From sequence record MN091626.1: 64,000 nucleotides of DNA. One strand, written 5' to 3'. The notes beneath the pieces were generated by a model. The model did no database searches. It was not told the origin of the DNA and saw only the letters and a program-made list of their open reading frames with translations. The translations under genes were made by a program, and so were the position numbers. Below, piece by piece: positions 1,869 to 59,771 of the stretch (positions are counted from its first letter, which is position 1; each line of letters starts with the position of its first letter).

Positions 1869-3170
1869 ATGTCAAAATTAACTAGCAAAATTAATGATTT
1901 GATTAAATCAAACCCATCAGTGTACGGTAAAGAAGATAATTACACGCCTATGTATGAATCAGGAATTGACTTATTGGACTATAGAAATGGTTTCTTAAAT
2001 ACTGTTACAGATGATGAACGTATTGGATTAATGGGCGGTAAAGTAACTACATTTATTGGTGGATCAGGTTCAGGTAAAACAACACTTGCTATTCAAGCAG
2101 CAGCAAAAATTGTTGAAAAATATGAGAACTCAAGTGTTATTCATTATGACTTTGAAGATGCAACTACTGATGAACGTATTTATCAAGTAACAGGTTGGTC
2201 TAAAGAAATGAAACAAGAAAAATACACTAAATTAAATAAAAAGATTAGTTTAGATTCAGTAGATCAATTAATTCGTGGTATCCGTGATACTAAATTAGAA
2301 AATGAAGAAGAATTCACTATCCATACAGACAAAATTGATCCAGAAACTGGAGAAAAAGTTTCATTCATGGCTCCAACAGTAGTTATCATTGACTCTGTTG
2401 CTACAATGGCTTCTAAAGAAATTGATGATAAAGATGGTGAAGGTGGACAAATGAATGCCACTAAACAAGCTAAAGATAATACAACATTCATTAAACGTAT
2501 TATTGGTTCATCTACATTAAATTCAGCTAATATTATGCTTATTTTAATTAATCATATTACAACTAAAATTGATATCAATCCATATGCAGCTACACCTAAA
2601 GAATTAAACTATCTTAAACAAGGTGAAGCATTACCAGGTGGTAAAGCAATCAACTATATGGCGAATAACATGTTTAAGATTAGTCCATCACAGGCTTTAG
2701 ATCCAGAAGGAAATTCTAATCAAGCTAAATATGGAATTAAAGGTTTTATCAATACAGTTGAAGTTATTAAATCACGTTCAAATGCAGCTGGTGCTAAATT
2801 TGATTTAATCTTTGAACAAAAGAATGGCTTTAATAATGCTTTATCAAATCTATTGTTCTTACAAAGTGAAAAAATGCTTAAAGGTAATCCAAGAGCTTAT
2901 CGTATTGATGGTTATGATGATGTTAGCTTTACACTTAAAACATTTATGGATAAATATGAGAGTAATAAAGATTTTAAAGAATACTTTGATAACTATGTTA
3001 AAGGTATCTATAAAGAAAAATTCTTAGCTAATATTGAACATGAATCTAGTTTAGATAATGAAGAATTAGAATTAGTTGAATTAGTTAATAAATATGAAGA
3101 TATTTGGTTAGGTTCAGACGGTAATTATTATGATTCTGATAAAAATGCTATAGAAGTATCTAAAGATTAA
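1869..3170 (+). CDS. uvsX: RecA/UvsX-like recombinase
   Basis: Walker A GGSGSGKTT, DFE motif, Walker B VVIIDSVA, ILINHI and PGGKAINY motifs typical of RecA family. Confidence 0.9.
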   Translation: MSKLTSKINDLIKSNPSVYGKEDNYTPMYESGIDLLDYRNGFLNTVTDDERIGLMGGKVTTFIGGSGSGKTTLAIQAAAKIVEKYENSSVIHYDFEDATTDERIYQVTGWSKEMKQEKYTKLNKKISLDSVDQLIRGIRDTKLENEEEFTIHTDKIDPETGEKVSFMAPTVVIIDSVATMASKEIDDKDGEGGQMNATKQAKDNTTFIKRIIGSSTLNSANIMLILINHITTKIDINPYAATPKELNYLKQGEALPGGKAINYMANNMFKISPSQALDPEGNSNQAKYGIKGFINTVEVIKSRSNAAGAKFDLIFEQKNGFNNALSNLLFLQSEKMLKGNPRAYRIDGYDDVSFTLKTFMDKYESNKDFKEYFDNYVKGIYKEKFLANIEHESSLDNEELELVELVNKYEDIWLGSDGNYYDSDKNAIEVSKD

Positions 3171-3239: not shown

Positions 3240-3288
3240 AAATATATATTATAAGATTGTAGAATATTAAGAGCATGATATTCTACAA
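3240..3288 (+). promoter_or_regulatory. Early-type promoter AATATATATTATAA plus leader hairpin
   Basis: Motif recurs about 12 times upstream of operons; 11-bp stem 3257-3288 follows. Confidence 0.7.
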
Positions 3289-23815: not shown

Positions 23816-24445
23816 ATGATTAGAATGAGAGATAAATTTTTATTATTTGAAAATGATGATAATAGCATATATATGCTATTATCAAATTTTAAATTCAATA
23901 AAGAAATTAAAATAGATTATACACATGATATAAAAAATATCGATGATGTTCCTAAGTATTTTAATAAAGGAATAAAGAGATTTAAAATGAGATATGACTT
24001 TCATTCAGGTCATATTATTAGACAAGATGAATTTTACAACTACATGGATAATTTAGATGCTGATTTTAAAAATTCAAATGCTAAAGCTTTAGAGAAAATA
24101 ACTTTCTCTAATCTTATTAGTGATGATAAAATCAATATAGTATATACAGGTAAGAAAGATGATAATAATAAAATTGTAAAAACTAATATTTACTTTATTG
24201 TCCCTGTTAGTATTATTTCTGAGGAATTAAATTCAAATCTAATATCGTTAGATATTACAGCTATGAATAAAAGATTAAATGATGTTTATAAATCTGAAAC
24301 AACCAATCAGAAATTATTAGGGATAAAACCTAGTGTTACAAATATCAATATTATTGATAGACAAAATAAAATTATTAATGAATACTTTAGAGATATAGGA
24401 GTAGAATATAACTTTATTAATGATTTTAGTAAATCAGAAGAATAA
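23816..24445 (+). CDS. Hypothetical protein
   Basis: AAGGAG SD. Confidence 0.75.
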   Translation: MIRMRDKFLLFENDDNSIYMLLSNFKFNKEIKIDYTHDIKNIDDVPKYFNKGIKRFKMRYDFHSGHIIRQDEFYNYMDNLDADFKNSNAKALEKITFSNLISDDKINIVYTGKKDDNNKIVKTNIYFIVPVSIISEELNSNLISLDITAMNKRLNDVYKSETTNQKLLGIKPSVTNINIIDRQNKIINEYFRDIGVEYNFINDFSKSEE

Positions 24446-24459
24446 AGGAGATTATATTT

Positions 24460-25191
24460 ATGATTGAAGAAGCTTTTAAATTAAATTTCATAAGTCTATT
24501 ATTAAATATACCTTACTTTTTAATATCAATTTACTTATTTTATTATTTTTATACTTACAAGAAAATTAAAAATAATAAAGATGATATATACGATGTAGCT
24601 CCAGTGGCTTTTACAAGTTATTTGAGTATAATAATTATAATTATACTCAAATTATCTACTAATAGTTTATCTCAATATGGTAATTTGATATATCATCCTT
24701 TTAAAATATTTACTTTAATTATAGTAGGTTTAATAATGTATGTGGCACTAGATGCTTCATTATTTATATTTGATAAGATGAAAAGTTCATTAAAAATATT
24801 CATTGTATTGAATATCTTTTTAATTTCATTATTAATATCTGATTCATTATTATTTAATATGATTATTATGATAGTCATATCAATTCTATTAATTTTAACC
24901 TCATTATACTTTACAGTTGATCATTTAGATAGTAAAGATAAATATGTAAAAATAACTTTTTGCACATTCTTTACTTTATTCCCTCTATTTTTATCATTGT
25001 TAATTATAAATATGGATGTAATTAAATTTAACTTAATAGATGTTAATACTAATAATAAAATTGATAATATGCATTTAATTATAATTGTACAAATAATTTT
25101 ACTAGTATGGAATTTAGTAGTAATGATATTCAAAATATTTAATATCAATATATACACCGTTATATCAGAATTATTTAAAAGAAATAAATGA
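24460..25191 (+). CDS. Polytopic membrane protein (about 7 TM)
   Basis: Multiple hydrophobic segments; AAGGAG SD. Confidence 0.75.
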   Translation: MIEEAFKLNFISLLLNIPYFLISIYLFYYFYTYKKIKNNKDDIYDVAPVAFTSYLSIIIIIILKLSTNSLSQYGNLIYHPFKIFTLIIVGLIMYVALDASLFIFDKMKSSLKIFIVLNIFLISLLISDSLLFNMIIMIVISILLILTSLYFTVDHLDSKDKYVKITFCTFFTLFPLFLSLLIINMDVIKFNLIDVNTNNKIDNMHLIIIVQIILLVWNLVVMIFKIFNINIYTVISELFKRNK

Positions 25192-25547
25192 ATATTAGGA
25201 TAATGATCAAATTAATGGTCATTATCCTAATATCATTTTCTTTTTTTGTAACTACCATTATTTTAGATATATATTATAATTATGAAGGGAGGAATATAGT
25301 AATGATATTTAATATTCTAATAGCATTAGCATATGTGGCACTTGTTTCTTTAGGATTAGGTGTTTCAGCTTTTTATATATCTTTATTTTTATTAAGATAT
25401 ATAAAAAATAATATTATCAAGAAAGAAATTAAAAATGAAAATAGAAAGTTATTTTATCTTTCGTTATTAATAGTTATAATATTCATGTCAATAAAATCAT
25501 ACGTTGATATAAAATTAAGTATTATAGAACAAATATTAAAAATGTAG
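25188..25547 (+). CDS. Membrane protein (3 TM)
   Basis: ATGA overlap; hydrophobic. Confidence 0.7.
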   Translation: MNIRIMIKLMVIILISFSFFVTTIILDIYYNYEGRNIVMIFNILIALAYVALVSLGLGVSAFYISLFLLRYIKNNIIKKEIKNENRKLFYLSLLIVIIFMSIKSYVDIKLSIIEQILKM

Positions 25548-25617
25548 AAAAGCGTAACATAAGACATTTTAATTATATATTATAATAATGAAGATATTAT
25601 AATATTAATTATATCTT
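25547..25617 (+). promoter_or_regulatory. Bipartite promoter AAAAGCGTAAC-N15-TATATATTATAA plus hairpin, copy 1
   Basis: Identical spacing in three copies. Confidence 0.7.
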
Positions 25618-25644
25618 TAATAAAAAAAAAGAGGAGAAATTAAA

Positions 25645-25923
25645 ATGACAGAATTTGAAAATGAAACTAAAGTATCAAAAGAGGAGAAGAAGATTAAAAG
25701 ATTTATTGATCAAGGTATTGATAATTTATCTGATACAGTAGGAGAAGGTATTGAAGGTATTCCGTTATCTTTAACTGATTATTTTCCTAAAATAAAGAAA
25801 TTAATTATTAAATTAATTGATAGAGAGGAAAGTGATGAAATTAAAATGACGAATGAATCAGGTGAAGTATTTAAATTTAATAGAACTTCACATGATATTT
25901 ATTTAACAGCAATCAAATTTTAA
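25645..25923 (+). CDS. Hypothetical protein
   Basis: GAGGAG SD. Confidence 0.75.
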   Translation: MTEFENETKVSKEEKKIKRFIDQGIDNLSDTVGEGIEGIPLSLTDYFPKIKKLIIKLIDREESDEIKMTNESGEVFKFNRTSHDIYLTAIKF

Positions 25924-25961
25924 AGAAAATTTTCTATGATCCAAAAAAAAAAATTAAAGGT

Positions 25962-26594
25962 GTGGTGTATATGATTAAAGTCAATGAACTATTAACACAA
26001 GTTAAAGAAATAAAAACAAATGACAGTTATACGAAATTAGTAAACGAGTATAGAGATATTATCAATGAAGAATATATATCTTATAAACCATTAAAAGATT
26101 ATTACAATTTCATTATATATTATTTAGAAAAATCTAGATATCAAGCATTGAAATCTAACAATTTTGATGAATCTAATTTAAATATCAAAACATTGATAGA
26201 CGATCTAATGACATTAAACAATATTGTTAAATCTGATATTTTTGATACTAAAGAAGTAATCAGATCTACTGGTTTTAAATTAACAAATGGTAGTACATTT
26301 GATAGAATTATTAAATACATTAAAGATAAACTAGATAAATTAATTATAGAGATAAATTCAGATAATTATAAATATCAAAATATCTATTTCTATCTACCTG
26401 AGCTAAATAATCTATTGCATAATACAATTCATATAGAACGTGTTTTAGATAAAAATAAAGATAATGTAGATATTATTAATATAGATAAATATAATTTATT
26501 TGAAATGATGCCTTGTAATGATATTATGGATAAAGATGAATTTTATATAATGGTTAATCATTTATATGATTTAGGATCTTTAGAAAAAGCGTAA
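25962..26594 (+). CDS. Hypothetical protein
   Basis: AAAGG SD; follows TTTTCTATGATCC motif. Confidence 0.75.
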   Translation: MVYMIKVNELLTQVKEIKTNDSYTKLVNEYRDIINEEYISYKPLKDYYNFIIYYLEKSRYQALKSNNFDESNLNIKTLIDDLMTLNNIVKSDIFDTKEVIRSTGFKLTNGSTFDRIIKYIKDKLDKLIIEINSDNYKYQNIYFYLPELNNLLHNTIHIERVLDKNKDNVDIINIDKYNLFEMMPCNDIMDKDEFYIMVNHLYDLGSLEKA

Positions 26595-26683
26595 CGTGTA
26601 ATAAAATAAGTATATATTATAATTATGAAGAAAGAGTTTATCATTAATTCTTTCTAATATAAAATTAAATGGAGGAATTTATT

Positions 26684-26854
26684 ATGAAAAAGAATTTAGT
26701 ATTGAAAAGTGTAGCAGGTCTTGGATTAGGTATTGTATTAGGTGTAGTAAGTAATAAGATTGACGACATGATTATGCAAAAGGAAATGGAAAGACAAATT
26801 TTTGAAAAAGCTTCAGAAATGACTTTTGAACATCCGTTCGCTAATTTAAAATAA
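26684..26854 (+). CDS. Small single-TM protein, paralog of 27396 (start re-called from 26669)
   Basis: GGAGG SD before ATG 26684; MKKNLVLKSVAGLGLGIVLGVVSNKID. Confidence 0.75.
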   Translation: MKKNLVLKSVAGLGLGIVLGVVSNKIDDMIMQKEMERQIFEKASEMTFEHPFANLK

Positions 26855-26881
26855 AGGAGGAAAGAGGATAATTGTTTTAAA

Positions 26882-26932
26882 GGTCTAATGAAAATGGATC
26901 AAGTTCATTAGGTCTATAATTTTCTATGATCC
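26882..26932 (+). other. Predicted H-type RNA pseudoknot, copy 1
   Basis: 11-bp stem with G-U pairs; loop GGATCA complementary to downstream TGATCC. Confidence 0.5.
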
Positions 26933-26956
26933 AATAATAAAAAGGAGTTAAAAACA

Positions 26957-27271
26957 ATGAATAACAAAACTAAATTAGCAGAATTAAGAAAAGAATTAAA
27001 AATCGTATATTCGGATATAGGATTGAGCAAAACGAGTACTGTAGAAGAAAGACTTCACAAGAAAAAAGAAAGATTAATTAAAGAAATTAATGAAATAGTA
27101 GAAAAAGATCAAAACATTTTTGATAGAGAAAAACATATAGCAAAAGTTAAAGACCGAAATAATGATAATATTTACAAAGGTTCAGATGAATTTTCTAAGG
27201 CAGGTAGACTTCATAGAAAATATCAAAAACAAGATAAAAACAGAATATTCAATAATCCGGTACAAGATTAA
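26957..27271 (+). CDS. Basic hypothetical protein, paralog of 27847
   Basis: Shared YKG.sd..KAGRLH..yQ motif. Confidence 0.75.
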   Translation: MNNKTKLAELRKELKIVYSDIGLSKTSTVEERLHKKKERLIKEINEIVEKDQNIFDREKHIAKVKDRNNDNIYKGSDEFSKAGRLHRKYQKQDKNRIFNNPVQD

Positions 27272-27395
27272 ATATTCATATAATCAGTTGAATTTGAAAA
27301 AGCGTAACAATATGGTTTTTAATTATATATTATAATTATGAAGAAAGAGTTTATCATTAACTCTTTCTAATAAAAATTAAAGGAGAAAAATTATT

Positions 27396-27566
27396 ATGAA
27401 AAACTTAGTATTGAAATCAGCAGTTGGATTTGCGGCAGGTATTGTATTAGGATTAGTGAGCAATAAAATTGATGCGTACACATTAGCAAAAATTGAAGAG
27501 AAAGAAGTATTAGATAAAGCAGATAGTATTATTAATAATTAATTAGGAGTTGAAAAGGATAATTGA
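27396..27566 (+). CDS. Small single-TM protein (56 aa), not in ORF track
   Basis: AAGGAG SD; MKNLVLKSAVGFAAGIVLGLVSNKIDAYTL. Confidence 0.8.
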
Positions 27567-27571
27567 TTTAA

Positions 27572-27623
27572 AGACCTAATGGACACGGATCAAGTTCATT
27601 AGGTCTATAATTTTCTATGATCC
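27572..27623 (+). other. Predicted H-type RNA pseudoknot, copy 2
   Basis: 12-bp stem; same loop-tail GGATCA/TGATCC pairing. Confidence 0.5.
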
Positions 27624-27658
27624 AATAATAAAAATAAAAATGAAAAGAGGAAATTAAA

Positions 27659-27841
27659 ATGTTAGACTTATTAAAAGGAATTGAATTTGTAAATGAAAAG
27701 GAAATTAACGAAGAGAAAGAATTATTAATCAATTATTCAGATGAAGCAAGATATCCATCTGAACAAGCTTATAGAGAAATAGATTCAATCATCGAAAGTT
27801 TCGACAATACAGCTTTCGGATTAAGAAAATGGGGAGTGTAA
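27659..27841 (+). CDS. Hypothetical protein
   Basis: GAGG SD. Confidence 0.65.
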   Translation: MLDLLKGIEFVNEKEINEEKELLINYSDEARYPSEQAYREIDSIIESFDNTAFGLRKWGV

Positions 27842-27846
27842 TTAGA

Positions 27847-28149
27847 ATGGTTAGAGAAGAAAAAATCAAACAAATGAAACAAGAATTACAAAAAATATTA
27901 GATAAAGAAATTAGATTTGGTTATAAACCAATTTCTAATAGAGACTTTGAAAAGAAATTAAAATTAATGAAACAGATAGACAAGTTAAAATTTGACATTA
28001 GATCTGAAAGATATTTAAGAAATGTCAAAAAGAACAAAATAAAGGAGTATAAAGGTATTAGCGATTATGCAAAAGCTGGAAGATTACATCAATCTTTCCA
28101 AAGTAAAGAAGAGCATAATCTATGGAAAGAAGAATTAGTAATTCAATAA
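27847..28149 (+). CDS. Basic hypothetical protein, paralog of 26957 (start re-called from 27829)
   Basis: GGGGAG SD; KAGRLH motif. Confidence 0.7.
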   Translation: MVREEKIKQMKQELQKILDKEIRFGYKPISNRDFEKKLKLMKQIDKLKFDIRSERYLRNVKKNKIKEYKGISDYAKAGRLHQSFQSKEEHNLWKEELVIQ

Positions 28150-28169
28150 CATAAATGGAGGAATTTATT

Positions 28170-28406
28170 ATGAAAATTTTAAGATTAAAAACTGAATGGG
28201 CGTTAGTTTTAGGTATGATATTAGGTTCAACTATTGGTTTAATGTCAAATGATTTCTTTGTAGGAGCTACAATTTCTATGTTGACACCAATAATTACTAT
28301 AGCAATTAATTATGTAATTGGTGATGAAAGAAAATCTAAAATCCAAGAAAGTAATAAATTATACTATATTAGAATGAATAGTGAAAAAGGAGATATATTT
28401 AAATAA
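28170..28406 (+). CDS. 2-TM membrane protein (start re-called from 28155)
   Basis: GGAGG SD, same ATGGAGGAATTTATTATGAAAA as 26669; INYVIG shared with next gene. Confidence 0.7.
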   Translation: MKILRLKTEWALVLGMILGSTIGLMSNDFFVGATISMLTPIITIAINYVIGDERKSKIQESNKLYYIRMNSEKGDIFK

Positions 28407-28606
28407 TGAATAAAGAAAAAAGATTATTGAAACTAAAGCCATGGATATTATTTTGGTTTACTCTTATAACTGGTTTTATCATAGGAGAAATGATTGGATA
28501 CGTAGAAGGGAAATCGTTATTTTTAGGTTTAATTTTGTCTGGAATATGTCTATCTATCAATTATGTTATAGGTGAAATTAGAAGAGATGGATTAAGAAGT
28601 GATTAG
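28406..28606 (+). CDS. 2-TM membrane protein, paralog of previous
   Basis: LK..W...INYVIG. Confidence 0.7.
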   Translation: MNKEKRLLKLKPWILFWFTLITGFIIGEMIGYVEGKSLFLGLILSGICLSINYVIGEIRRDGLRSD

Positions 28607-28651
28607 GATTAAATTTAGATTATTAATTAAATAATAAGGAGGTGCTTGGAT

Positions 28652-28759
28652 ATGTTATTAGAAAACTTTGTTACAATTATCGTGTTACTTGGTTTAATGA
28701 AATTTACAGGTTGTTTTAAATTTATGAAAGAAATCTGGTCTAACAAAGGTAACAAATAA
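28652..28759 (+). CDS. Micro membrane peptide (35 aa), not in ORF track
   Basis: AAGGAGG SD; MLLENFVTIIVLLGLMKFTGCFKFMKEIWSNKGNK. Confidence 0.6.
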   Translation: MLLENFVTIIVLLGLMKFTGCFKFMKEIWSNKGNK

Positions 28760-28836
28760 CAACAAAAGAGTGGATTATTTCTATGATCCGCTCTACATAT
28801 TTAAATTAAAAAAAAAAACGAAAAGAGGAAATTAAA

Positions 28837-29343
28837 ATGAAAAAATTATTAATGGTGTTAGCATTAATCGCTTTAATCGCAGTTATCGGAGCAGCAGGAA
28901 TATTTGGTTATAGTAGTTTTAAAAGCTTAACAGTCAATAAAGAAGATAGTAAGACTGAAGAAGTATCTAAAAAGAAAGAAGACAAAAAAGAAAAGAAAGA
29001 ACAAGAAGAATCAGATAATGTAGAAGTAAATCAACAACAAGATCAAACTCAAGAAGTAAATAATAATGAACGACAAAATCAAACTACAGAAGATAGTAAT
29101 ACAAATGTACAACAAAATCAACAACAAGAACCAGTAGTTGAAGAGAAAACTCAAGTAACAGATAATGAAGGTAATAATATAGATGATATGGATTCAGAAG
29201 AATTTATTTCTAAATATACAGAAGGAATGGATGAAGAAGAAGCTCAAACAGTAAAAGACATGGCTGAAGAAGATTCAGGATATGAAGATTTCTTACGTGG
29301 ACAAGTAGAAGCTAGACAAAACGGACAAGGCGGAAATTACTGA
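28837..29343 (+). CDS. Signal-anchored surface protein, Q/N/E-rich, paralog 1
   Basis: MKKLLMVLALIALIAVIGAAGIFGYSSFK. Confidence 0.85.
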   Translation: MKKLLMVLALIALIAVIGAAGIFGYSSFKSLTVNKEDSKTEEVSKKKEDKKEKKEQEESDNVEVNQQQDQTQEVNNNERQNQTTEDSNTNVQQNQQQEPVVEEKTQVTDNEGNNIDDMDSEEFISKYTEGMDEEEAQTVKDMAEEDSGYEDFLRGQVEARQNGQGGNY

Positions 29344-29366
29344 TAAGAAGAAAAGAGTGAAATGAA

Positions 29367-29834
29367 ATGAAAAAAATCTTAAGTATTTTAACAGCGATAG
29401 CTTTAATCACAGTTATTGGAGCAGCAGGAGTATTCGGCTATAGTAGTTTTAAAGAATTAAATAATAGTAAAGATAGTCATAAAGTTGAAACAAGTAAAAA
29501 ACAAAAAGAATCAGATGATAAAAATAACACTCAACAACAAGAACAAAATACATCAAAAGAAAACAACAATATCCAACAACAATCAAATGAAGATAGCCTA
29601 ACAGAAAATATGGATGAAGAATATAAAAAACAACAGGAAATGTATGAAAAGCAATCAAAAGGTGAAGCTCCAGAACCGGGTTCTATAATTGGCAACCCAC
29701 CAAAAAATTATGAAACTCCAGAAAAAGATAAAATAACTATAAGTGAGTTAAGAGAAGTTTTAGGCGATGATATTGATGAAAGTAAAATTGATGAAGCAAA
29801 AGCGTCTGGCGAATATATTAATGATGAAGAATAA
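29367..29834 (+). CDS. Signal-anchored surface protein, paralog 2
   Basis: MKKILSILTAIALITVIGAAGVFGYSSFK. Confidence 0.85.
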   Translation: MKKILSILTAIALITVIGAAGVFGYSSFKELNNSKDSHKVETSKKQKESDDKNNTQQQEQNTSKENNNIQQQSNEDSLTENMDEEYKKQQEMYEKQSKGEAPEPGSIIGNPPKNYETPEKDKITISELREVLGDDIDESKIDEAKASGEYINDEE

Positions 29835-29865
29835 AAAATAAATAAAAAGAATAGAGGAAAATAAA

Positions 29866-30342
29866 ATGAAAAAATTATTAGTAGCATTATCAATCTTAGC
29901 AGTAATTGTAGTATTAGCAGCGGCAGGTGTGTTTGGATATTCAAAATATAAAGAAGCAGAAATGAAACAACATAATTTAGAAACACAATTAGAAGAAAAA
30001 AATTCCAATGAGCAAACTAATGAAAACGATCAACAACAAGAACAATCAAATACAAATGAATCTCAAAATCAAGAAAATAGTTCAACAAAAGACAATAACG
30101 ACAATAAACAAAAAGTATCTAGGGACAATGTATTTGACTATGCTTTAGCTGCAGTAAATGAAGTAGGTGACGCTGATTTAATGAAATTCCAAGAACCTTC
30201 TTACAGTGATGGTGTATGGACAATTGACGCTAATAATAAATCTGGTTCAGGGTCTAATACTATAAAAGTATACGATGATGGCTGGGTACAGATATATGAT
30301 GGATCTGGTGAAATAGCTCATGAAACAAAAATAGAACTATAA
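29866..30342 (+). CDS. Signal-anchored surface protein, paralog 3, with globular C-terminal domain
   Basis: MKKLLVALSILAVIVVLAAAGVFGYSKYK. Confidence 0.85.
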   Translation: MKKLLVALSILAVIVVLAAAGVFGYSKYKEAEMKQHNLETQLEEKNSNEQTNENDQQQEQSNTNESQNQENSSTKDNNDNKQKVSRDNVFDYALAAVNEVGDADLMKFQEPSYSDGVWTIDANNKSGSGSNTIKVYDDGWVQIYDGSGEIAHETKIEL

Positions 30343-31456: not shown

Positions 31457-31987
31457 ATGGAAAATAATTATTATGCAGTTGCACAGTTCCAGAATCAAAG
31501 AGAGTTCAAAGGAAGAGAGTATATTTATAAAGTACCAGAATATTTATTAGAAAAAGAGAATTCTTATTTCAGTAAATACGCATTGGTTTCTAATTTAAAT
31601 TTAAATGAAGTTAATTTAAATGATACTGGAGTTCATAACGATGATTTAGAAAAATTTGCAAGTTCAGTTAAAGTTGTTAAAGTATTAAAAATTATGGATG
31701 AAGAAGAATTTATACAATCAGAATATGTAAACTCTGTAAAAGATTTAGATCAAAGAATTAATCAAGAAGGAGAAACTTTTGAATATAAAAATATCGTATC
31801 GTTCTTTGATAATGAATTAATAACACACATTGATTTTATTTCTAAAGATAACAAAAAAGAAAAATTAGAAAAATTAATGAGAATCAGAATGGAGAAATTA
31901 AATAAAGAAAAGAACTTACAAGAAAGAATAATTCAATATCAAGATAATGAATTAGACGAATTATTTAAAAAATATAAAGAATTATAA
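31457..31987 (+). CDS. Hypothetical protein with C-terminal coiled coil
   Basis: AAGGAG SD. Confidence 0.75.
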   Translation: MENNYYAVAQFQNQREFKGREYIYKVPEYLLEKENSYFSKYALVSNLNLNEVNLNDTGVHNDDLEKFASSVKVVKVLKIMDEEEFIQSEYVNSVKDLDQRINQEGETFEYKNIVSFFDNELITHIDFISKDNKKEKLEKLMRIRMEKLNKEKNLQERIIQYQDNELDELFKKYKEL

Positions 31988-32235: not shown

Positions 32236-32733
32236 ATGTTAAAAAATAAAGAATTTGAAATTAACCAAGATATTATTAATAATGAATTACTAAAAACAAA
32301 ATACTTAGAAATGGAGATTACAAAAATGTTTAAAAATGACTTATTATTAAATTTAAGATATCTAAAAGATAATCTATTATCATCATGGTTATTTGATATG
32401 AGTGTAGCACATTTTACTAATTTAGAGGTTTTCTATGATCCTGACTATAAAATTAAAATGACTTTTATAGTAGATGATAAAAATATCGAATATACTTTAA
32501 ATGAAGCAGTTCAAGAAATGATTTATAATTTCATGATTAAAAAATCAAATGATGAAAGAGCATGTGAGATTATTAAATCTATTATTGAATTTGAATATTT
32601 TAAAAAGATGAATAAAAAGGGTCATGATATTGATATGGAGTATGCTAATTTACTTATGGATAAAGTTAAAGAATTACAAGATAAATACAATATTAGTAAT
32701 AAACAAGCTAAGAAATTATATATTGCTTATTAA
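32236..32733 (+). CDS. Hypothetical protein
   Basis: GGGAG SD. Confidence 0.75.
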   Translation: MLKNKEFEINQDIINNELLKTKYLEMEITKMFKNDLLLNLRYLKDNLLSSWLFDMSVAHFTNLEVFYDPDYKIKMTFIVDDKNIEYTLNEAVQEMIYNFMIKKSNDERACEIIKSIIEFEYFKKMNKKGHDIDMEYANLLMDKVKELQDKYNISNKQAKKLYIAY

Positions 32734-34883: not shown

Positions 34884-35354
34884 GTGAGAAATAAAAAAAG
34901 AAGCATAGATAGTTTGATAAATAATAATCTAGAATTACCAATTGAGATTACTGAAAATTATATAAATAATTTTATATACAAATCATTAACTGCTATAAAT
35001 AAGAAAAAAGAAATAAAACCAAATCAAACTTATATAATTAATCATAAGAATGAATTATTTAATAAAGCAGATAATTTCATAAATTGTATTTTAGAATTAT
35101 TAAAAGGTGATGTGGGTACTTTAATAGATAAAAAAGATTTAAAGTTAAAAAGAAATGTAAAGAAAGACAATATAAGTAATTGTCTTACAATATATACTAT
35201 TGTAGAAACTTTAACTTACAATAATTCTATAACAATGATGATGGTAAAAAATGTAAATAATACCAATAAGGAAGTAACTGGTGAACTAATATTTGATATT
35301 AATATAAGTGATAAATTAGGTAAAGATAATTACAATGAAAATATTTATATTTAA
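34884..35354 (+). CDS. Hypothetical protein
   Basis: GGAAGG SD, GTG start. Confidence 0.65.
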   Translation: MRNKKRSIDSLINNNLELPIEITENYINNFIYKSLTAINKKKEIKPNQTYIINHKNELFNKADNFINCILELLKGDVGTLIDKKDLKLKRNVKKDNISNCLTIYTIVETLTYNNSITMMMVKNVNNTNKEVTGELIFDINISDKLGKDNYNENIYI

Positions 35355-36284: not shown

Positions 36285-36332
36285 AATTATATATTATAAT
36301 AATGAAGATAAATATTATTAATATTATCTTCA
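36285..36332 (+). promoter_or_regulatory. Early-type promoter plus leader hairpin
   Basis: AATTATATATTATAA then TGAAGATA...TATCTTCA. Confidence 0.7.
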
Positions 36333-36357
36333 ATAAAAAAAAAAGGAGTTTTATATT

Positions 36358-37910: not shown

Positions 37911-38444
37911 TTGAATAAATATTTTAAATTTAAATTAAATAATAAAAGTGATTACGATGTATTTAAATTTTCAGGAAATGAAGAAGAAATAAGCGATTCT
38001 AAAATTATAGAATCTTATTTTGCTTATATGTTTGATTATTATATAAGTGAAGCAATACCTGATACTAGCATGATAAATATTACGGTATTTACTAAAGATG
38101 AAAGAAAAAGATTATTTAGATTTTCTATAGATAAACCTCCAGTTTATATAGAAGAGCCTTTTAGTACTTTATTTATGATTGAAAATGATGAAGATAAACA
38201 AGTCAATTTTAGAGATTTTAATGAAATTAAAAAGTTTATACTTCAAAAGATTATGGAATTAAATGAAGACGAATTTTATATTTACATTGATTATAACTTT
38301 GATTTTTCTTATAAAATAGATTACGATGATGTATTTGATAAAATATTATTTACTAAAAATAATCTAAATCTTTATTTATTCTTTATTAAAGAAACAGATG
38401 AAAATGAATATAAAAATTATCTAGTAAGAGAGAATTTTAAATAA
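37911..38444 (+). CDS. C-terminal-tag family protein
   Basis: MNKYFKFK ... TDENEYKNYLVRENFK. Confidence 0.85.
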   Translation: MNKYFKFKLNNKSDYDVFKFSGNEEEISDSKIIESYFAYMFDYYISEAIPDTSMINITVFTKDERKRLFRFSIDKPPVYIEEPFSTLFMIENDEDKQVNFRDFNEIKKFILQKIMELNEDEFYIYIDYNFDFSYKIDYDDVFDKILFTKNNLNLYLFFIKETDENEYKNYLVRENFK

Positions 38445-39313: not shown

Positions 39314-39973
39314 ATGAGTAATTATTTATATCGTTTTAACAAAGAGAATGTAAATATCTTCTATCATAAAAGGACTAATAATGGTCATAAAATGTTATTT
39401 AATAATAGTAATGATAAAGATAGATCTATATACTTAATAAATACTGATGAAGAAATCAATAATATGGAACTAGTATCTAAATATATTGCTGGAAAAGTAT
39501 TTGAAATACTAAATCAAGAAAATATGAAAATAGTACATATGGATTTCTTTAATAGTAAATTAGAATTCTTTATAAGTAGATCATCCAAGAATAAATATAT
39601 AATGAATATGTATTTTAGTTTAAAAAGTTATAATGATCTAATTGAAAATGAAAAAGAATTTATAGATAGTGTTAATGAACTTAATTTAGACTTTTTAAAA
39701 TCAGTTTCTTTAGATCAAGACAATAATCATGTATTAGATATGACATTAATATTTTTAATAGATAAAAATAAGATAGATGAATTTATTAAAAATCTATTTT
39801 ACATTAATTATATAAAGATAATAGAATTTATAATAGATACTATATCTGTATATGCAGATGATTATAAGAAATTTAATGAAGAAATAAATATTCTTTTGGA
39901 TCATAGAAATTTTATAGAAGAGATAACATATAAAGAATATAAAAAGATAATGACAAAAGAGATGTTTATTTAA
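39314..39973 (+). CDS. C-terminal-tag family protein
   Basis: MSNYLYRFN ... ITYKEYKKIMTKEMFI. Confidence 0.85.
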   Translation: MSNYLYRFNKENVNIFYHKRTNNGHKMLFNNSNDKDRSIYLINTDEEINNMELVSKYIAGKVFEILNQENMKIVHMDFFNSKLEFFISRSSKNKYIMNMYFSLKSYNDLIENEKEFIDSVNELNLDFLKSVSLDQDNNHVLDMTLIFLIDKNKIDEFIKNLFYINYIKIIEFIIDTISVYADDYKKFNEEINILLDHRNFIEEITYKEYKKIMTKEMFI

Positions 39974-42016: not shown

Positions 42017-45013
42017 TTAGTTTCTACCATAAATATATGAGTTAAGAATCCAAGCATTACCTTTTTGTCCTGGTTTAACTCTTGCACGAATTGCTATAGA
42101 TGCTATAGATTGTGCCGGAATACCCATATCTACAATAATCTCTTTATGTTTTGTCTTAGTTACACTAGTTGATGTGTCTTTAGGTATAGATACAGTTTTA
42201 TCAAAGAATACTCCATTTTGATCATTAAATGAATCAACTTTAATATCTATACCACATTGTGGAGTAGCATACCATATACCAATGTGTAACCATCTAGTTT
42301 CATGTTGTCCGTATAATGTCATAGCACGTCTAAAGTAGCTACCAGTAGTCTTATCACTAAACATAAATGCATTACCAACATTTTTAAATCTTGGAGTACC
42401 ATTTGACATCAAATCTTGTACACCTGGTTCTGAACGTACATAAGCTGTAGTAAATCGAGGCATACCGTTATAAACTAGATATCCACCATCAGGACGTTTA
42501 ATAGTAATACCACCCTTAACTTCTCCCATAGCATCTAACATTGTTTGAACAACAATATTTTTAGACATTAAATTAGTAATAGCCGCTTCTTTAATAGTAG
42601 CTTTACCATTAGAAATTATTACATCACCATCATTGATATCAACCATTTTGGATTTTAATTTAATATTATTAGGATCAACTTCCAATGTAGATAATTTATC
42701 ATTAGAAGAAGATGACATAGTAATACCATCTGCTAAAATAGATAATGCGGAACCCATTTTTTCTATTTTAGTTTTATCAGCATTGTAAGATTCTTTAGTA
42801 ACACTTAAAGCGATATTATTTTCTGTTTGACTAATTCTACTTTCCATATTAGTAATTCTAGCATTACTATCTTTAATAGAAGGTTGCCAAGCAGTAGACT
42901 TGTTACCTTCTTCAACTTTCAATCCTTCAATATCAACAGACATTGGGAAAGTTCCATTTTTATTAATAACCATATTAATTAATGTATCAACTGTAAATGA
43001 ATCATTAGGAATAAATACTACTTCTATTAACGTTAAAGCAGAAGTATCATCAAACGTAATATTACGTGAATCTTGACCTTTAGCAACACTATTAACAAAA
43101 GTATTAGTTATAGTTGAATTAGGTATACTAATATCTACATTAGTTAATGTACCAGTTTTCTTTTCTAAGTTAAAACTTAATATGTGTTCACGTCTATTTC
43201 TAACTTTATCTAATTTAAATTTAATACCTTGACCGTTAGCAGTTAAAGCCGCATTAAGTTCTCCGTATTCTAAATAACTAGTTTTAGTTAAAGTTACAGA
43301 ACCAATTGGTGTAATATTATCAATACTAACTAAGTTCATACCGCCAACTGTAATTTTACCAGCTTCTGTAACAGCATAACCATTAGAAATACTGTCAATA
43401 GCTTTTTGAATAGCATCTTTAATATTTGATTGAGCTTCATTATATCTCAAGTAGTTAGTGTTAAATTGAGCTATTTCTTCTTGAGTAGCTACTCCATCGC
43501 TAATAGTGTTAGTAATATCTTGTATTAATATATTATATTTTTCATTAAATAAATCATATTTATTTTTTAAATCTGTTTTTACTGAATTAGCCATCATTTT
43601 ATTAGGATAAAGTGTATTAAAGATTTTATCTATCTCAGCTTTATCCTTATCAATAACATTTTTTTGTTTATCAATAGCAATTCTTTCAGCATTAGATATA
43701 ATGCCATCTTTAAAAGCCTCAGTAACCGTATCACCTAAACCTACAGCGTTCTTTTCAATATTAGTTATTTTACCATTAATAGTTTTATTATAGTTTTCTA
43801 ACATATTGTCATAATCTTCAGGAGCTGCTGTCCAGTCAGAAGAAACACTACCTCTTTCAACTTTAACTCTAGCAATATCAAATGTACCACTTAAACCATT
43901 AAGATCAGTGTCTACTCCAAGAAGTAATTTAGTATTATTTCTTCCAGTCAGTGTTTGTTTATATACAAATGAATATCTATGCCATTCTTCATCAATATCT
44001 AAATACTTTTCAGCAATTGGTGTAGAATAATTACCAGAAGGATCAATAAAGTAACAATAATCAAGTCTATTAAATGTATCTGATCTAAAATCAAATGAAA
44101 TAGTATAAGTTTCATTGTATTCTAATTTAAATCCATTATAGCTTTGAGCTCCTACTTGACCTTCAATTCCTTCAGTATTAATTGTAAAATAACTTTTACC
44201 GTTACTGTCTTGTCCAAAAGTTAAAGCATTTGGGTTTGATGAATTTAAAGTATCTGGTTTTAATAACCAATTACCTGAAACTGCTAAAGAATTTTCTAAT
44301 AAGTTTTTACCACCAATAACAATACCATCCATTTCAGATTTAGAAACTGTTTGTTCTATTAAATCTGCAAATTGAGATATTTGACTTTCAAATTCAGTTA
44401 CTTTATTATTAACGGTATCTATATCAGCTCTAGTGACTGTATCTTGTAAAACTCTAGCTGTTTGTTCTCTAAATGATTCTAATTTAGTAATACTATCATT
44501 AATTTCATTAAGAGTATAATCAGTAGCTATACTCTTAATAGATTCTGCAGTTTGTTCTACTTTAGTACTTAAATATTGTATAGATGATTCATATTTATTA
44601 ACTTTAGACATTGCTATTGATAAAGATTCTTCATTAGATGAAACTCTTCCATTTAAAGAATCTAGATTACCTTTAATATCAGAATCCCATCCACCTTCAG
44701 CAATACTATCAATATAGTCAATACTTAGTTTTTGGTATTTTCTTAACTCCGTTTTTAATGTATCAAGTGTAACATAGTTAGATAAATCTAAATCAATATC
44801 GTGACTACCATCTAAATTTCTTAATTTTTCTACTAAATTATCATTTTCTTTATCTAAAGAATCAATATTTGTATTTAATACATTAATTCTATTTTTATTA
44901 TCTTCTGATAGATTTTTAATGCTATCTTGTTCTTGTAATAAAGAATTGAATTTCGATTTAATAGAATTTATTTCTTCATTTATTTGAAGAAGATTCTTTT
45001 CTTTATCTTCCAT
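42017..45013 (-). CDS. Tail fibre/receptor-binding protein, siphovirus minor-tail type
   Basis: Coiled-coil N-terminus; two CBM-like modules bounded by IGGKNLLENS/KVERGSVSSDWTAAPED and VGGMNLV/KVEEGNKSTAWQPS; C-terminal domain shared with the 2664-aa protein. Confidence 0.75.
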   Translation of the reverse strand: MEDKEKNLLQINEEINSIKSKFNSLLQEQDSIKNLSEDNKNRINVLNTNIDSLDKENDNLVEKLRNLDGSHDIDLDLSNYVTLDTLKTELRKYQKLSIDYIDSIAEGGWDSDIKGNLDSLNGRVSSNEESLSIAMSKVNKYESSIQYLSTKVEQTAESIKSIATDYTLNEINDSITKLESFREQTARVLQDTVTRADIDTVNNKVTEFESQISQFADLIEQTVSKSEMDGIVIGGKNLLENSLAVSGNWLLKPDTLNSSNPNALTFGQDSNGKSYFTINTEGIEGQVGAQSYNGFKLEYNETYTISFDFRSDTFNRLDYCYFIDPSGNYSTPIAEKYLDIDEEWHRYSFVYKQTLTGRNNTKLLLGVDTDLNGLSGTFDIARVKVERGSVSSDWTAAPEDYDNMLENYNKTINGKITNIEKNAVGLGDTVTEAFKDGIISNAERIAIDKQKNVIDKDKAEIDKIFNTLYPNKMMANSVKTDLKNKYDLFNEKYNILIQDITNTISDGVATQEEIAQFNTNYLRYNEAQSNIKDAIQKAIDSISNGYAVTEAGKITVGGMNLVSIDNITPIGSVTLTKTSYLEYGELNAALTANGQGIKFKLDKVRNRREHILSFNLEKKTGTLTNVDISIPNSTITNTFVNSVAKGQDSRNITFDDTSALTLIEVVFIPNDSFTVDTLINMVINKNGTFPMSVDIEGLKVEEGNKSTAWQPSIKDSNARITNMESRISQTENNIALSVTKESYNADKTKIEKMGSALSILADGITMSSSSNDKLSTLEVDPNNIKLKSKMVDINDGDVIISNGKATIKEAAITNLMSKNIVVQTMLDAMGEVKGGITIKRPDGGYLVYNGMPRFTTAYVRSEPGVQDLMSNGTPRFKNVGNAFMFSDKTTGSYFRRAMTLYGQHETRWLHIGIWYATPQCGIDIKVDSFNDQNGVFFDKTVSIPKDTSTSVTKTKHKEIIVDMGIPAQSIASIAIRARVKPGQKGNAWILNSYIYGRN

Positions 45014-45584: not shown

Positions 45585-46217
45585 TTATTTATTCTCCATT
45601 CTTTTCTCTTTTATTTTTTCTATTAATGTTTTATATCTATCTAATAATACTTTATCCATTCTACCTTTAGATTCTTCTAGATCATCTTTTACATATTTAA
45701 TATGTATGAATGTTTTATCTTTAAAATCACTAGAATACTTCTTAAGAGAAGTTACTTTAAATATCTGAGCATCATCTTTCCAAAACATTTCATTCATAAC
45801 ATCAAATGTAGTTTTTTGGAAATTATCAACATCAGGAGTATTTGTTCTCTTAATTAAACCTAAAAGTTTAAATAATATAAGTTTTATTGAATCAGTATTA
45901 TTACAAGGATTTCTTTCTGTAATTAATTCAAATTCAATAGGACTTTCAAAATTATTTTTAATGATATCTTTTATAAAATCTTCTTTTAATTCTTCTTTCA
46001 TTCTTTTCTTTAATTCTTTTTTATATGTGTGTAAAGGATCATAAGTTCTCATTCCGCTTTTTCTATGTCTAAGATATTGATAAACTTCATGATCATCTAT
46101 AGAAATGATAATTTCATTATCATTTACACTTTTATACTCAATGTTACAATTTTTAACTTCTTCAATTTTATCTAATATCTTTTTAGGTACTTCTTTTTTC
46201 TTTTTAGGCATTTTCAT
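45585..46217 (-). CDS. rusA: RusA-like Holliday junction resolvase
   Basis: PDVDNFQKTTFDVMNEMFWKDDAQI matches RusA PD.DN..K...D.L.G....DD.QI. Confidence 0.85.
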   Translation of the reverse strand: MKMPKKKKEVPKKILDKIEEVKNCNIEYKSVNDNEIIISIDDHEVYQYLRHRKSGMRTYDPLHTYKKELKKRMKEELKEDFIKDIIKNNFESPIEFELITERNPCNNTDSIKLILFKLLGLIKRTNTPDVDNFQKTTFDVMNEMFWKDDAQIFKVTSLKKYSSDFKDKTFIHIKYVKDDLEESKGRMDKVLLDRYKTLIEKIKEKRMENK

Positions 46218-59749: not shown

Positions 59750-59771
59750 TCATTTATATAATATATATTTA
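59750..59771 (-). promoter_or_regulatory. Early-type promoter
   Basis: TAAATATATATTATATAAATGA on minus strand. Confidence 0.65.

Follow-up and report, generated by a model that had tools for sequence, protein, structure and literature searches.

Recurring composite control sequences in front of small phage genes have been described for T4-like phages, in which PeSL cassettes, consisting of an early promoter, a stem-loop and a Shine-Dalgarno (SD) sequence, are concentrated before ORFans, and recombination between cassettes leads to indels and gene replacements (PMC2839356, PMC4122927). In phage AR9, the injected virion polymerase recognises the early promoter AAATATATATTAT-N6-G+1, which was defined by differential RNA sequencing (dRNA-seq; PMC5312081). 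The core of this promoter, TATATTAT, was predicted upstream of 29 genes of phage MarsHill, for which a virion multisubunit RNA polymerase was also described (bioRxiv 10.1101/2020.12.14.422802). Here, we report an array of small genes located in a 64,000-nucleotide (nt) stretch of DNA (the window), which was 100% identical to Staphylococcus phage PALS_2 (MN091626.1, 268,748 bp). Positions are those of the window, which equal record positions minus 62,000, unless the record is named. The array consisted of small genes combined with two recurring control modules, an early promoter module (P) and a short invariant box (M). We consider it likely that this region is a fast-changing early-gene block remodelled at shared control sequences by ordinary recombination.

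PALS_2 belongs to the AR9/PBS1-like phages, which carry genes for two multisubunit RNA polymerases, a virion and a non-virion enzyme, and eight related S. aureus jumbo phages matched the window at 84-94%. MarsHill, Madawaska and PB50 have annotated subunits of both enzymes, and the annotation of PALS_2 includes beta/beta' genes. The G+C content of the window was 20-30%, and its genes were located on the + strand up to approximately 41 kb. The initial annotation, made from the letters alone, had described the array as modular expression cassettes with constant regulatory spacers and exchangeable genes, and all elements that it had listed were found at the places given: AAAGCGTAAC occurred exactly at 25549, 26586 and 27299, with no other copy in the 268.7-kb genome, and was followed in all three units, after a spacing of 15 nt, by TATATATTATAA (25574, 26611 and 27324), a hairpin, an SD sequence, a small gene and TTTCTATGATCC. 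The repeat families comprised a 54-nt promoter block and a 31-nt M block, each present three times, as well as a promoter-plus-hairpin block (73 nt, 86%) and a hairpin-plus-M block (82 nt, 91%). The paralogue pairs noticed in units 2 and 3 were confirmed, the small membrane proteins F8 and F8' being 52% identical and the F9 and F9' proteins (approximately 100 amino acids (aa)) 29% identical (E 1e-7); these two units are an old tandem duplication. Their control blocks were 86-91% identical, compared with just 29% of the amino acids of F9 and F9', a contrast compatible with strong constraint on these blocks as well as with homogenisation of the two. The cargo of unit 1 was unrelated to that of units 2 and 3, again as first described, and the control modules were the sole part that it had in common with them.

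All of the following array features were located on the + strand. The first promoter (P0; TATATTAT at 25270-25277, predicted +1 G at 25284) matched the AR9 early consensus, had no leader hairpin and was followed by F6 (25302-25547), an 81-aa membrane protein with weak Pfam transmembrane matches only. The promoter module of unit 1 (25574-25644) comprised TATATTAT at 25576-25583, a predicted +1 G at 25590, a stem-loop at 25590-25618, an A-run and an SD sequence, and preceded the unit's cargo F7 (25645-25923), a 92-aa ORFan which, together with its promoter, had no counterpart in PB50, AH12 and Machias. M box 1 (25931-25942), with the sequence TTTCTATGATCC, was found approximately 7 nt past the F7 stop without a hairpin, and was followed by F4b (25971-26594), a 207-aa member of a multi-copy family. 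In unit 2, the promoter module (26611-26683; TATATTAT at 26613-26620, predicted +1 G at 26627) contained a stem-loop at 26629-26655 with one G.U pair, and its SD-ATG block (26666-26689) led into F8 (26684-26854), a 56-aa single-pass membrane protein. An RNA hairpin, the letters TATAA and M box 2 followed (26881-26932; arms at 26881-26892 and 26904-26915, M at 26921-26932), and then F9 (26957-27271), a 104-aa basic protein. The unit 3 promoter module (27324-27395; TATATTAT at 27326-27333, predicted +1 G at 27340) carried a stem-loop at 27342-27368 (z -2.9) and an SD sequence in front of F8' (27396-27542, 48 aa). The segment at 27572-27623 consisted of an RNA hairpin (27572-27606, -23.3 kcal/mol, z -3.2) and M box 3 (27612-27623), and was followed by F11 (27659-27841, 60 aa) and F9' (27847-28149, 100 aa).

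The fourth partial unit of the initial annotation was retained only in part. Its genes (28152-28759), which encode the small membrane proteins F12 (28170-28406), F12' (28406-28606) and F13 (28652-28759), did begin with a block shared with unit 2, since a 24-nt SD-ATG-AAAA stretch was identical at 26666 and 28152 (its 16-nt core being unique to these two places genome-wide), and they did end in an M box. They had no promoter of their own. Given the missing promoter, the SD-ATG block shared with F8 and the terminal M box, this segment is best read as the distal part, or tail, of the unit 3 operon. The M box in question (M box 4, 28778-28789) formed the loop (UUCU) and the 3' arm of a hairpin of 12 bp (28767-28794, -16.5 kcal/mol, z -5.3), and no shuffled sequence was as stable. 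Three tandem paralogues of the signal-anchored, lipoprotein-like family F14 (28837-30342, phrog_11228) were found after this M box. They contained low-complexity linkers rich in Q, N and E, and were present in two or three copies of varied length in the relatives.

The promoters of units 1 to 3 fitted the AR9 consensus in the form (T/A)TATATATTAT-AAT(A/T)AT-G. Scanning the PALS_2 genome, as had been suggested initially, revealed 31 intergenic sites matching the consensus, with leaders mostly 48-65 nt long; other examples in the window were the modules at 3245, 6103, 15429, 17173, 23219, 31393 and 36290 (+) and at 59765 (-). At 27 of the 31 promoter sites a stem-loop began at +1 to +3 (mean z -4.4 versus shuffles), as compared with one of ten non-promoter matches. 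The stems varied widely in sequence between sites and between relatives with the pairing kept, and their G.U pairs were valid on the sense strand only. No such hairpin was present at the seven AR9 sites examined, so the 5' stem-loop appears to be a feature of the staphylococcal clade that is apparently undescribed; in the literature searched, we found no mention of the 5' hairpin, the M box or a junction analysis. The promoter motif itself is already published, and much of what had been taken for a constant spacer is the standard early promoter known from the sister phage MarsHill. The part of the spacer claim that stood is that the promoter and M are control sequences kept constant between differing genes, and AAAAGCGTAAC, the third string concerned, had to be set apart as coding sequence or its relic. 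A hairpin located right at the 5' end and a strong SD sequence are the known determinants of mRNA protection in Firmicutes (PMC3997798), and by analogy the stem-loop may protect the 5' end of early mRNA. The P modules are predicted to be active promoters from their match to the consensus. Host sigma-70-like sites were not enriched in the region (73 versus 66 +/- 10 in shuffles), and a role for host sigma-70 promoters was rejected.

Remodelling was examined by a comparison of relatives. Open reading frames (ORFs) from nine loci were clustered into families, and P and M were mapped on each. The nine phages showed five gene orders, and not the single fixed arrangement that, according to the initial annotation, would have refuted its reading. 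PALS_2 and S6/UFV_DC4 had the order P F6 / P F7 M F4b / P F8 M F9 / P F8' M F11 F9' F12 F12' F13 M F14.., and MarsHill and Madawaska had the same order with F4c added after F9 and F20 F21 F22 M added after M3. PB50 and Machias were without P-F7, kept F4c, carried F22 without a preceding M and had F25 added after M4. AH12 was without P-F7, F4c and the segment F8'-M3, and LY01 had the order P F7 M F9 F4c / P F8 M F11... The junctions between these orders fell in the M box, the hairpin-plus-M block, the promoter leader and the SD-ATG region. The single M between F7 and F9 of LY01 was a chimera, its left flank being that of M1 and its right flank that of M2, on either side of a 20-nt core which did not differ between any of the copies. 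In MarsHill, F20-F22 were bracketed by direct repeats of the hairpin-plus-M block; these genes were missing from PALS_2, S6 and LY01, and LY01 and PALS_2 carried the recombinant form at this site. Homology between PALS_2 and PB50/AH12 began 6 nt before M1, the P3 leader of AH12 was joined to F11 at the SD-ATG region, and F25 started just past the M4 hairpin. Contigs from four metagenomic or other public runs (relatives at 85-99% identity), which are weaker evidence than finished genomes, showed further variants: a direct joint linking the P3 leader and the F12 SD-ATG block (27376->28152), absence of F7 (25578->25919), a one-unit recombinant of F8 and F8' (26749->27459) and replacement of F12-F12' by 440 other letters (28149->28646).

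Modules that were nearly identical were also found at distant loci (88-98% over 54-76 nt overall). One sub-family of P modules was located at record positions 37984, 51074, 79187 and 85233 (88-94% over 57-76 nt), and the modules at record 190669 (+) and 267681 (-) were 98% identical. The unit 1 module paired with that at record 98304 (window 36290-36350; 90% over 60 nt). The genes behind the sub-family modules were unrelated (E > 0.2). Since hairpins can otherwise vary freely in sequence, their identity between loci implies copying and not convergence. At three loci, the same module preceded different genes in PALS_2 and PB50. At one of them, the g028 locus, which was read base by base, homology between the two phages stopped at the start codon and resumed at the SD region of the next gene. 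In addition, the SD-ATG string of an alpha-type promoter module (AGGAGATGAAATGGATAATG, record 38040-38048) recurred at PB50rc ~134405-134430, where it lay at the right-hand junction of a replaced gene; this recurrence suggests that translation start regions also act as recombination joints.

A plain old tandem duplication followed by divergence, with purifying selection on the control sequences and no exchange of cargo, would account for part of these data. Units 2 and 3 are clear duplicates, the AAAAGCGTAAC strings place the end of an F4 gene inside the duplicated unit, promoter conservation is expected anyway, and variable genes behind P were not enriched genome-wide. Such a duplication does not account for five arrangements across nine genomes, for chimeric junctions inside M and the hairpin-plus-M block, for the modules that unit 1 and distant loci share in spite of freely varying hairpins and unrelated genes, or for true replacements behind the same module and the further metagenomic variants. 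This explanation was therefore largely refuted by the relatives, and we regard it as quite unlikely.

Several observations nevertheless weigh against remodelling at control sequences, or against the functions that we assign to them. In the comparison of PALS_2 with PB50, strain-specific genes were found directly downstream of P in 6 of 42 cases versus 25 of 237 elsewhere (p 0.43, odds ratio 1.4), and, in a second count for these two phages, in 8 of 44 versus 26 of 243 (p 0.20, odds ratio 1.9); because neither genome-wide enrichment was significant, a general role of the P modules in driving gene turnover cannot be claimed. The high identity of the control blocks could be explained by purifying selection alone. 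The F4c deletions described below made no use of repeats. The hairpin is dispensable for an AR9-type polymerase, given that AR9 early transcripts have no 5' stem-loop. Copies of M were also found in coding sequence, in which they encode FYDP, and two copies were antisense to genes, the hairpin of M was missing in unit 1, and a simple terminator scan did not call the hairpin-plus-M sites. The transcription starts, the function of the stem-loop and possible termination at M are predictions read from the DNA.

The strings of AAAAGCGTAAC were traced to the F4 family. In F4b, the last residues (..L E K A stop) are encoded by AAAAGCGTAAC, so that the final codons, AAAAGCGTAA, constitute copy 2 of the string, and the same string forms the terminal codons of LY01 F4c. 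In MarsHill F4c, which has the one-base-shorter GAAAAGCGTAAC, the reading frame continues to a later stop (..E K R N V stop). F4c (215-222 aa) was intact between F9 and P3 in MarsHill, Madawaska, PB50, Machias and LY01, and was deleted in PALS_2, S6/UFV_DC4 and AH12, in which its last ~25-27 nt remained and three different left breakpoints were found. In PALS_2, the remnant is the last ~27 nt of the gene (27282-27308, +), ending in copy 3 of AAAAGCGTAAC. Copy 1, after F6 (25548-25558, +), is a similar relic of an F4-family 3' end. AAAAGCGTAAC is thus the end of an F4 gene or its relic, a fossil of the duplicated unit with no control role. Its use as a -35 or UP element was considered and rejected, since it was missing at the other 28 early promoters and represents F4 C-terminal coding sequence or a relic. 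The F4 family had at least four copies around the array (23826-24446, 25971-26594, 31457-31987 and 34884-35354), with more in the relatives, and gave only a weak, sub-threshold BrxC-helical Pfam match.

With regard to mechanism, the initial annotation had proposed a recombination-fed array, loosely integron-like, with no recombinase visible nearby. The notion of an array fed by recombination was supported by the five arrangements and by the junctions at control repeats, with the reservation that some deletions, such as those of F4c, were repeat-free. The statement on recombinases did not hold, as two candidate recombination enzymes are encoded in the window, namely a RecA/UvsX-type recombinase (1869-3170, +; PF00154, E 1.2e-7), whose orthologue is annotated as UvsX-like in PB50 and AR9, and a RusA-type Holliday junction resolvase (45585-46211, -; PF05866, E 1.4e-12). 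Both are labelled 'hypothetical protein' in the PALS_2 record. The crossovers were located within ~20-135 nt of shared homology, and several deletions occurred without any repeat.

The integron comparison was not upheld either. An integron-like system, in which an unrecognised site-specific recombinase would insert and excise gene cassettes by cutting at M (or AAAAGCGTAAC) as its attC-like site, would agree with the invariant 12-nt core found at several junctions, often within a hairpin, and with the over-representation of exact but not of one-mismatch M copies. No integrase is annotated in the complete PALS_2 or PB50 records, from which not every protein was scanned, and no integrase domain was detected in the ten array proteins scanned (F8' and F13 excluded). 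Moreover, each of the three units has its own promoter, no attC-like core was seen by eye, and the junctions involved several kinds of sequence, including P leaders, SD-ATG regions, the F8 coding sequence and non-repeat sites. The crossovers lay inside flanking homology of 20-135 nt, M occurs in frame inside genes, and AAAAGCGTAAC is a gene end. A site-specific system of this kind was accordingly rejected as very improbable.

Remodelling by ordinary recombination would proceed as follows. The region would be a hyperplastic early-gene block of an AR9-like jumbo phage, built from standard control modules. Module P would provide a virion-polymerase early promoter (TATATTAT, six bases, G+1), a stem-loop at the 5' end, an A-rich leader of constant length and an SD sequence, and would be followed by a small gene, usually encoding a membrane protein. 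Module M, a 12-13-nt box mostly just behind or inside an RNA hairpin, would form the boundary to the next genes and may act in RNA, as an attenuator or as a processing or stability signal. The array would have grown by tandem duplication of an F4 - P - F8 - M - F9 unit, and its ongoing remodelling would result from homologous or short-homology recombination among the P, M and SD-ATG repeats, together with some illegitimate deletions. Recombination would probably be carried out by the RecA/UvsX-type recombinase and the RusA resolvase of the phage itself. In this way, whole genes could be deleted, inserted or replaced and still be wired for expression, with selection keeping expressible products. 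Within this account, the motifs, structures, arrangements and junctions are observations, and the promoter activity, the functions of the hairpins and of M and the acting enzymes are deduced from them.

The M box was an invariant 12-mer. In the window, TTTCTATGATCC occurred exactly at 25931, 26921, 27612, 28778, 32430 (+) and 39898 (-); these six exact copies compare with an expectation of 0.86 that even admits one mismatch, and six was not attained in any of 100 shuffles. Genome-wide, 12 exact copies were present versus ~0.03 expected, and five one-mismatch copies, roughly the chance level (both rough estimates, the former composition-based), with 10 of the 12 exact copies oriented along transcription. 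The core (T)TTCTATGATCC was unchanged in ~40 copies from nine phages whose flanks differed. In the array units, M separates the small gene closest to the promoter from the gene that follows, and is found after a 13-bp hairpin in units 2 and 3, within a 12-bp hairpin in unit 4 and without a hairpin in unit 1. Across 18 aligned copies, the hairpin before M had 13 bp, and one pair was switched from C-G to U-A in six of them; the remaining one-sided changes in the lower 12 pairs gave G.U (+ strand), and the apical pair was broken in 3 of the 18. The pair switch and the changes to G.U only point to a structure at the RNA level for this hairpin. With respect to a possible intrinsic terminator, the letters UUUUCU started 4-5 nt past the main stem, or with no gap if a weaker extension of 3 bp is counted. 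Within genes, M was nearly always in frame and read as FYDP (32430-32441 (+) in PALS2_114; record 22874, 39838 and 53630). FYDP was found four times per proteome versus 0.35 expected, and the rarer Phe codon TTC was used in 7 of 8 cases, which suggests selection on M at the nucleic-acid level. A literature search for the M sequence found nothing relevant.

Two of the copies of M were found in other settings. One lay antisense to the + strand gene PALS2_127 (39898-39909, -) at a position conserved in PB50, which may reflect chance plus coding constraint. The other was located in the very AT-rich stretch of 350 nt from which an early gene and a RecD-like helicase gene diverge (record 167483-167834), and was conserved in PB50 despite diverged flanks; this divergent region could be a replication or regulatory region.

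Our best guess is that M is an RNA-level boundary element involved in attenuation, processing or stability, and this is the least certain step of the explanation. The main alternative is a DNA-level promoter or operator, for example a promoter of a third, 'middle' class or a site bound by a regulator, with the genes after M forming separate, later transcription units. An SD sequence and a start codon were always found within 24-47 nt downstream of M, the genes after M have no early or late promoter motif, M is placed directly behind a terminator-like hairpin in units 2 and 3, and it was kept in the non-coding region by the RecD-like helicase gene although the flanks had diverged. This proposal sits poorly with the over-representation of the exact 12-mer alone, as promoters normally tolerate mismatches, with the two promoter classes of AR9 (PMC5312081), and with the position of M in unit 4, where it forms the loop and the 3' arm of a stable hairpin, and in coding sequence elsewhere; we judge it unlikely. 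A bolder version of the RNA-level boundary element is that UUUCUAUGAUCC is a new, strictly sequence-specific signal for phage transcription or RNA processing (e.g., termination, pausing or cleavage involving the multisubunit phage polymerases), which punctuates early operons and is at the same time a preferred joint for gene exchange, and which, with P and the hairpin, would make the phage-polymerase counterpart of PeSL, possibly with genes being moved as excised circles. This idea is offered tentatively and is rather doubtful.

Other roles for M were rejected. A late promoter was excluded, as late genes instead carry the AR9-type motif AACA-N6-TA. In PALS_2, the motif AACA-N6-TA/G was found 20-60 nt upstream of many late or structural genes, including, in the window, those ending at 45013 (-) and 56987 (-) and the one starting at 60960 (+); this motif was reported as not found de novo for MarsHill (bioRxiv 10.1101/2020.12.14.422802). 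A general early terminator is unlikely, since just approximately six intergenic copies stand against 31 early promoters. Searching with a 17-mer that includes M returned 101 scattered matches in unrelated bacteria, with a single one in Staphylococcus, which is about the chance level and speaks against a host element. A pseudoknot between the hairpin loop and M (GGAUCA with UGAUCC) was broken in 5 of 18 copies without compensation. A hairpin with an M-complementary loop was observed at record 241220-241337, 22 nt upstream of tRNA-Asn and downstream of a sigma-A-like -10 sequence. The segment containing tRNA-Asn and this anti-M hairpin was entirely absent from PB50, which retains M boxes, and M was therefore discarded as the target of a phage antisense RNA.

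Upstream of the array, a long hairpin with a T-run (25178-25247, +; a 32-nt inverted repeat, 81% complementary) is predicted to be the intrinsic terminator closing the preceding operon. It was the sole terminator-like site called between 24500 and 31500 by the simple scan, and its counterpart is annotated in MarsHill and Madawaska. No Rfam family matched between 24500 and 33500. Domain searches of the ten array proteins against Pfam and PHROGs returned just weak transmembrane matches and one lipoprotein-like family, and no relatives of F9' were found in IMG/VR. A search for RNA sequencing runs found none that contained the sequence. Outside the window, a ~23-kb block (record 249.8-268.7 kb plus 1-4 kb) was inverted between PALS_2 and PB50 with respect to the remaining genome alignment.

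RNA-polymerase-carrying jumbo phages are under development for S. aureus therapy, and most of their early genes are without an assigned function. If the remodelling reading is correct, new early genes are wired through a few portable control modules and swapped there, which would explain the fast divergence of the accessory genes. Engineers would gain natural plug-in sites and a compact promoter-leader part that is independent of the host polymerase, and the PeSL idea would reach beyond T4-like phages and host sigma-70 promoters. Two signals deserve particular attention, namely the 5' hairpin of the staphylococcal clade, which AR9 does not share, and the invariant M box.

Compared with AR9/PBS1, the promoter core (A)TATATTAT and the G six bases downstream were the same, and the numbers of early promoters per genome were similar (31 in PALS_2, 41 in AR9 and 29 predicted in MarsHill; PMC5312081; bioRxiv 10.1101/2020.12.14.422802). 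Beyond the promoter, the staphylococcal phages have a 5'-terminal stem-loop and a leader that is mostly 48-65 nt long; the seven AR9 sites examined have neither, and the hairpin is unmentioned in the AR9 paper (PMC5312081) and the MarsHill preprint (bioRxiv 10.1101/2020.12.14.422802). The hairpin placed a few nt from the 5' end, combined with a strong SD sequence, resembles the Bacillus 5' stabilisers of the aprE and ermC leaders (PMC3997798), from which it differs in that the function is proposed from position only and in its serial, genome-wide use by a phage. Integrons likewise have small genes in a row, with recurring short and partly foldable sequences between them. They differ in having promoterless cassettes served by one common promoter, unlike the PALS_2 units with a promoter each; no GTTRRRY/RYYYAAC cores were seen at the PALS_2 boundaries (by eye, with no attC model run), and the PALS_2 junctions are multi-site. 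The morons of lambdoid phages described by Hendrix and colleagues are reportedly promoter-gene-terminator units inserted between genes, and the P - small gene - hairpin/M segment similarly resembles a self-contained transcription unit that is present or absent between neighbours. Morons are usually expressed from the prophage by the host polymerase. They are not known to form arrays or to have homologous control modules in common.

By analogy, the PeSL cassette is the closest known system. In both cases, a short, repeated composite control sequence (early promoter, stem-loop and SD sequence) precedes small ORFan genes in variable regions, junctions of indels and replacements between close relatives fall in the repeats, and homologous recombination is proposed. 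The PALS_2 modules are ~75-90 nt long, compared with ~100 bp for PeSL, and 27 of 31 have the stem-loop. The PALS_2 promoter would be read by the phage multisubunit virion RNA polymerase, and the PeSL promoter is read by the host sigma-70 polymerase. The PeSL stem-loop serves as a terminator or attenuator of upstream transcription, and excised mini-circles also belong to the PeSL description. The PALS_2 stem-loop is found at +1 to ~+30, is AU-rich and is followed by an A-run and no U-run; its position downstream of the predicted start and the A-run argue against a terminator role, and it is probably not a terminator. Enrichment near variable genes was not significant genome-wide in PALS_2, another difference from PeSL. 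Finally, PALS_2 possesses an extra invariant element, the M box, which was the site of several of the junctions.

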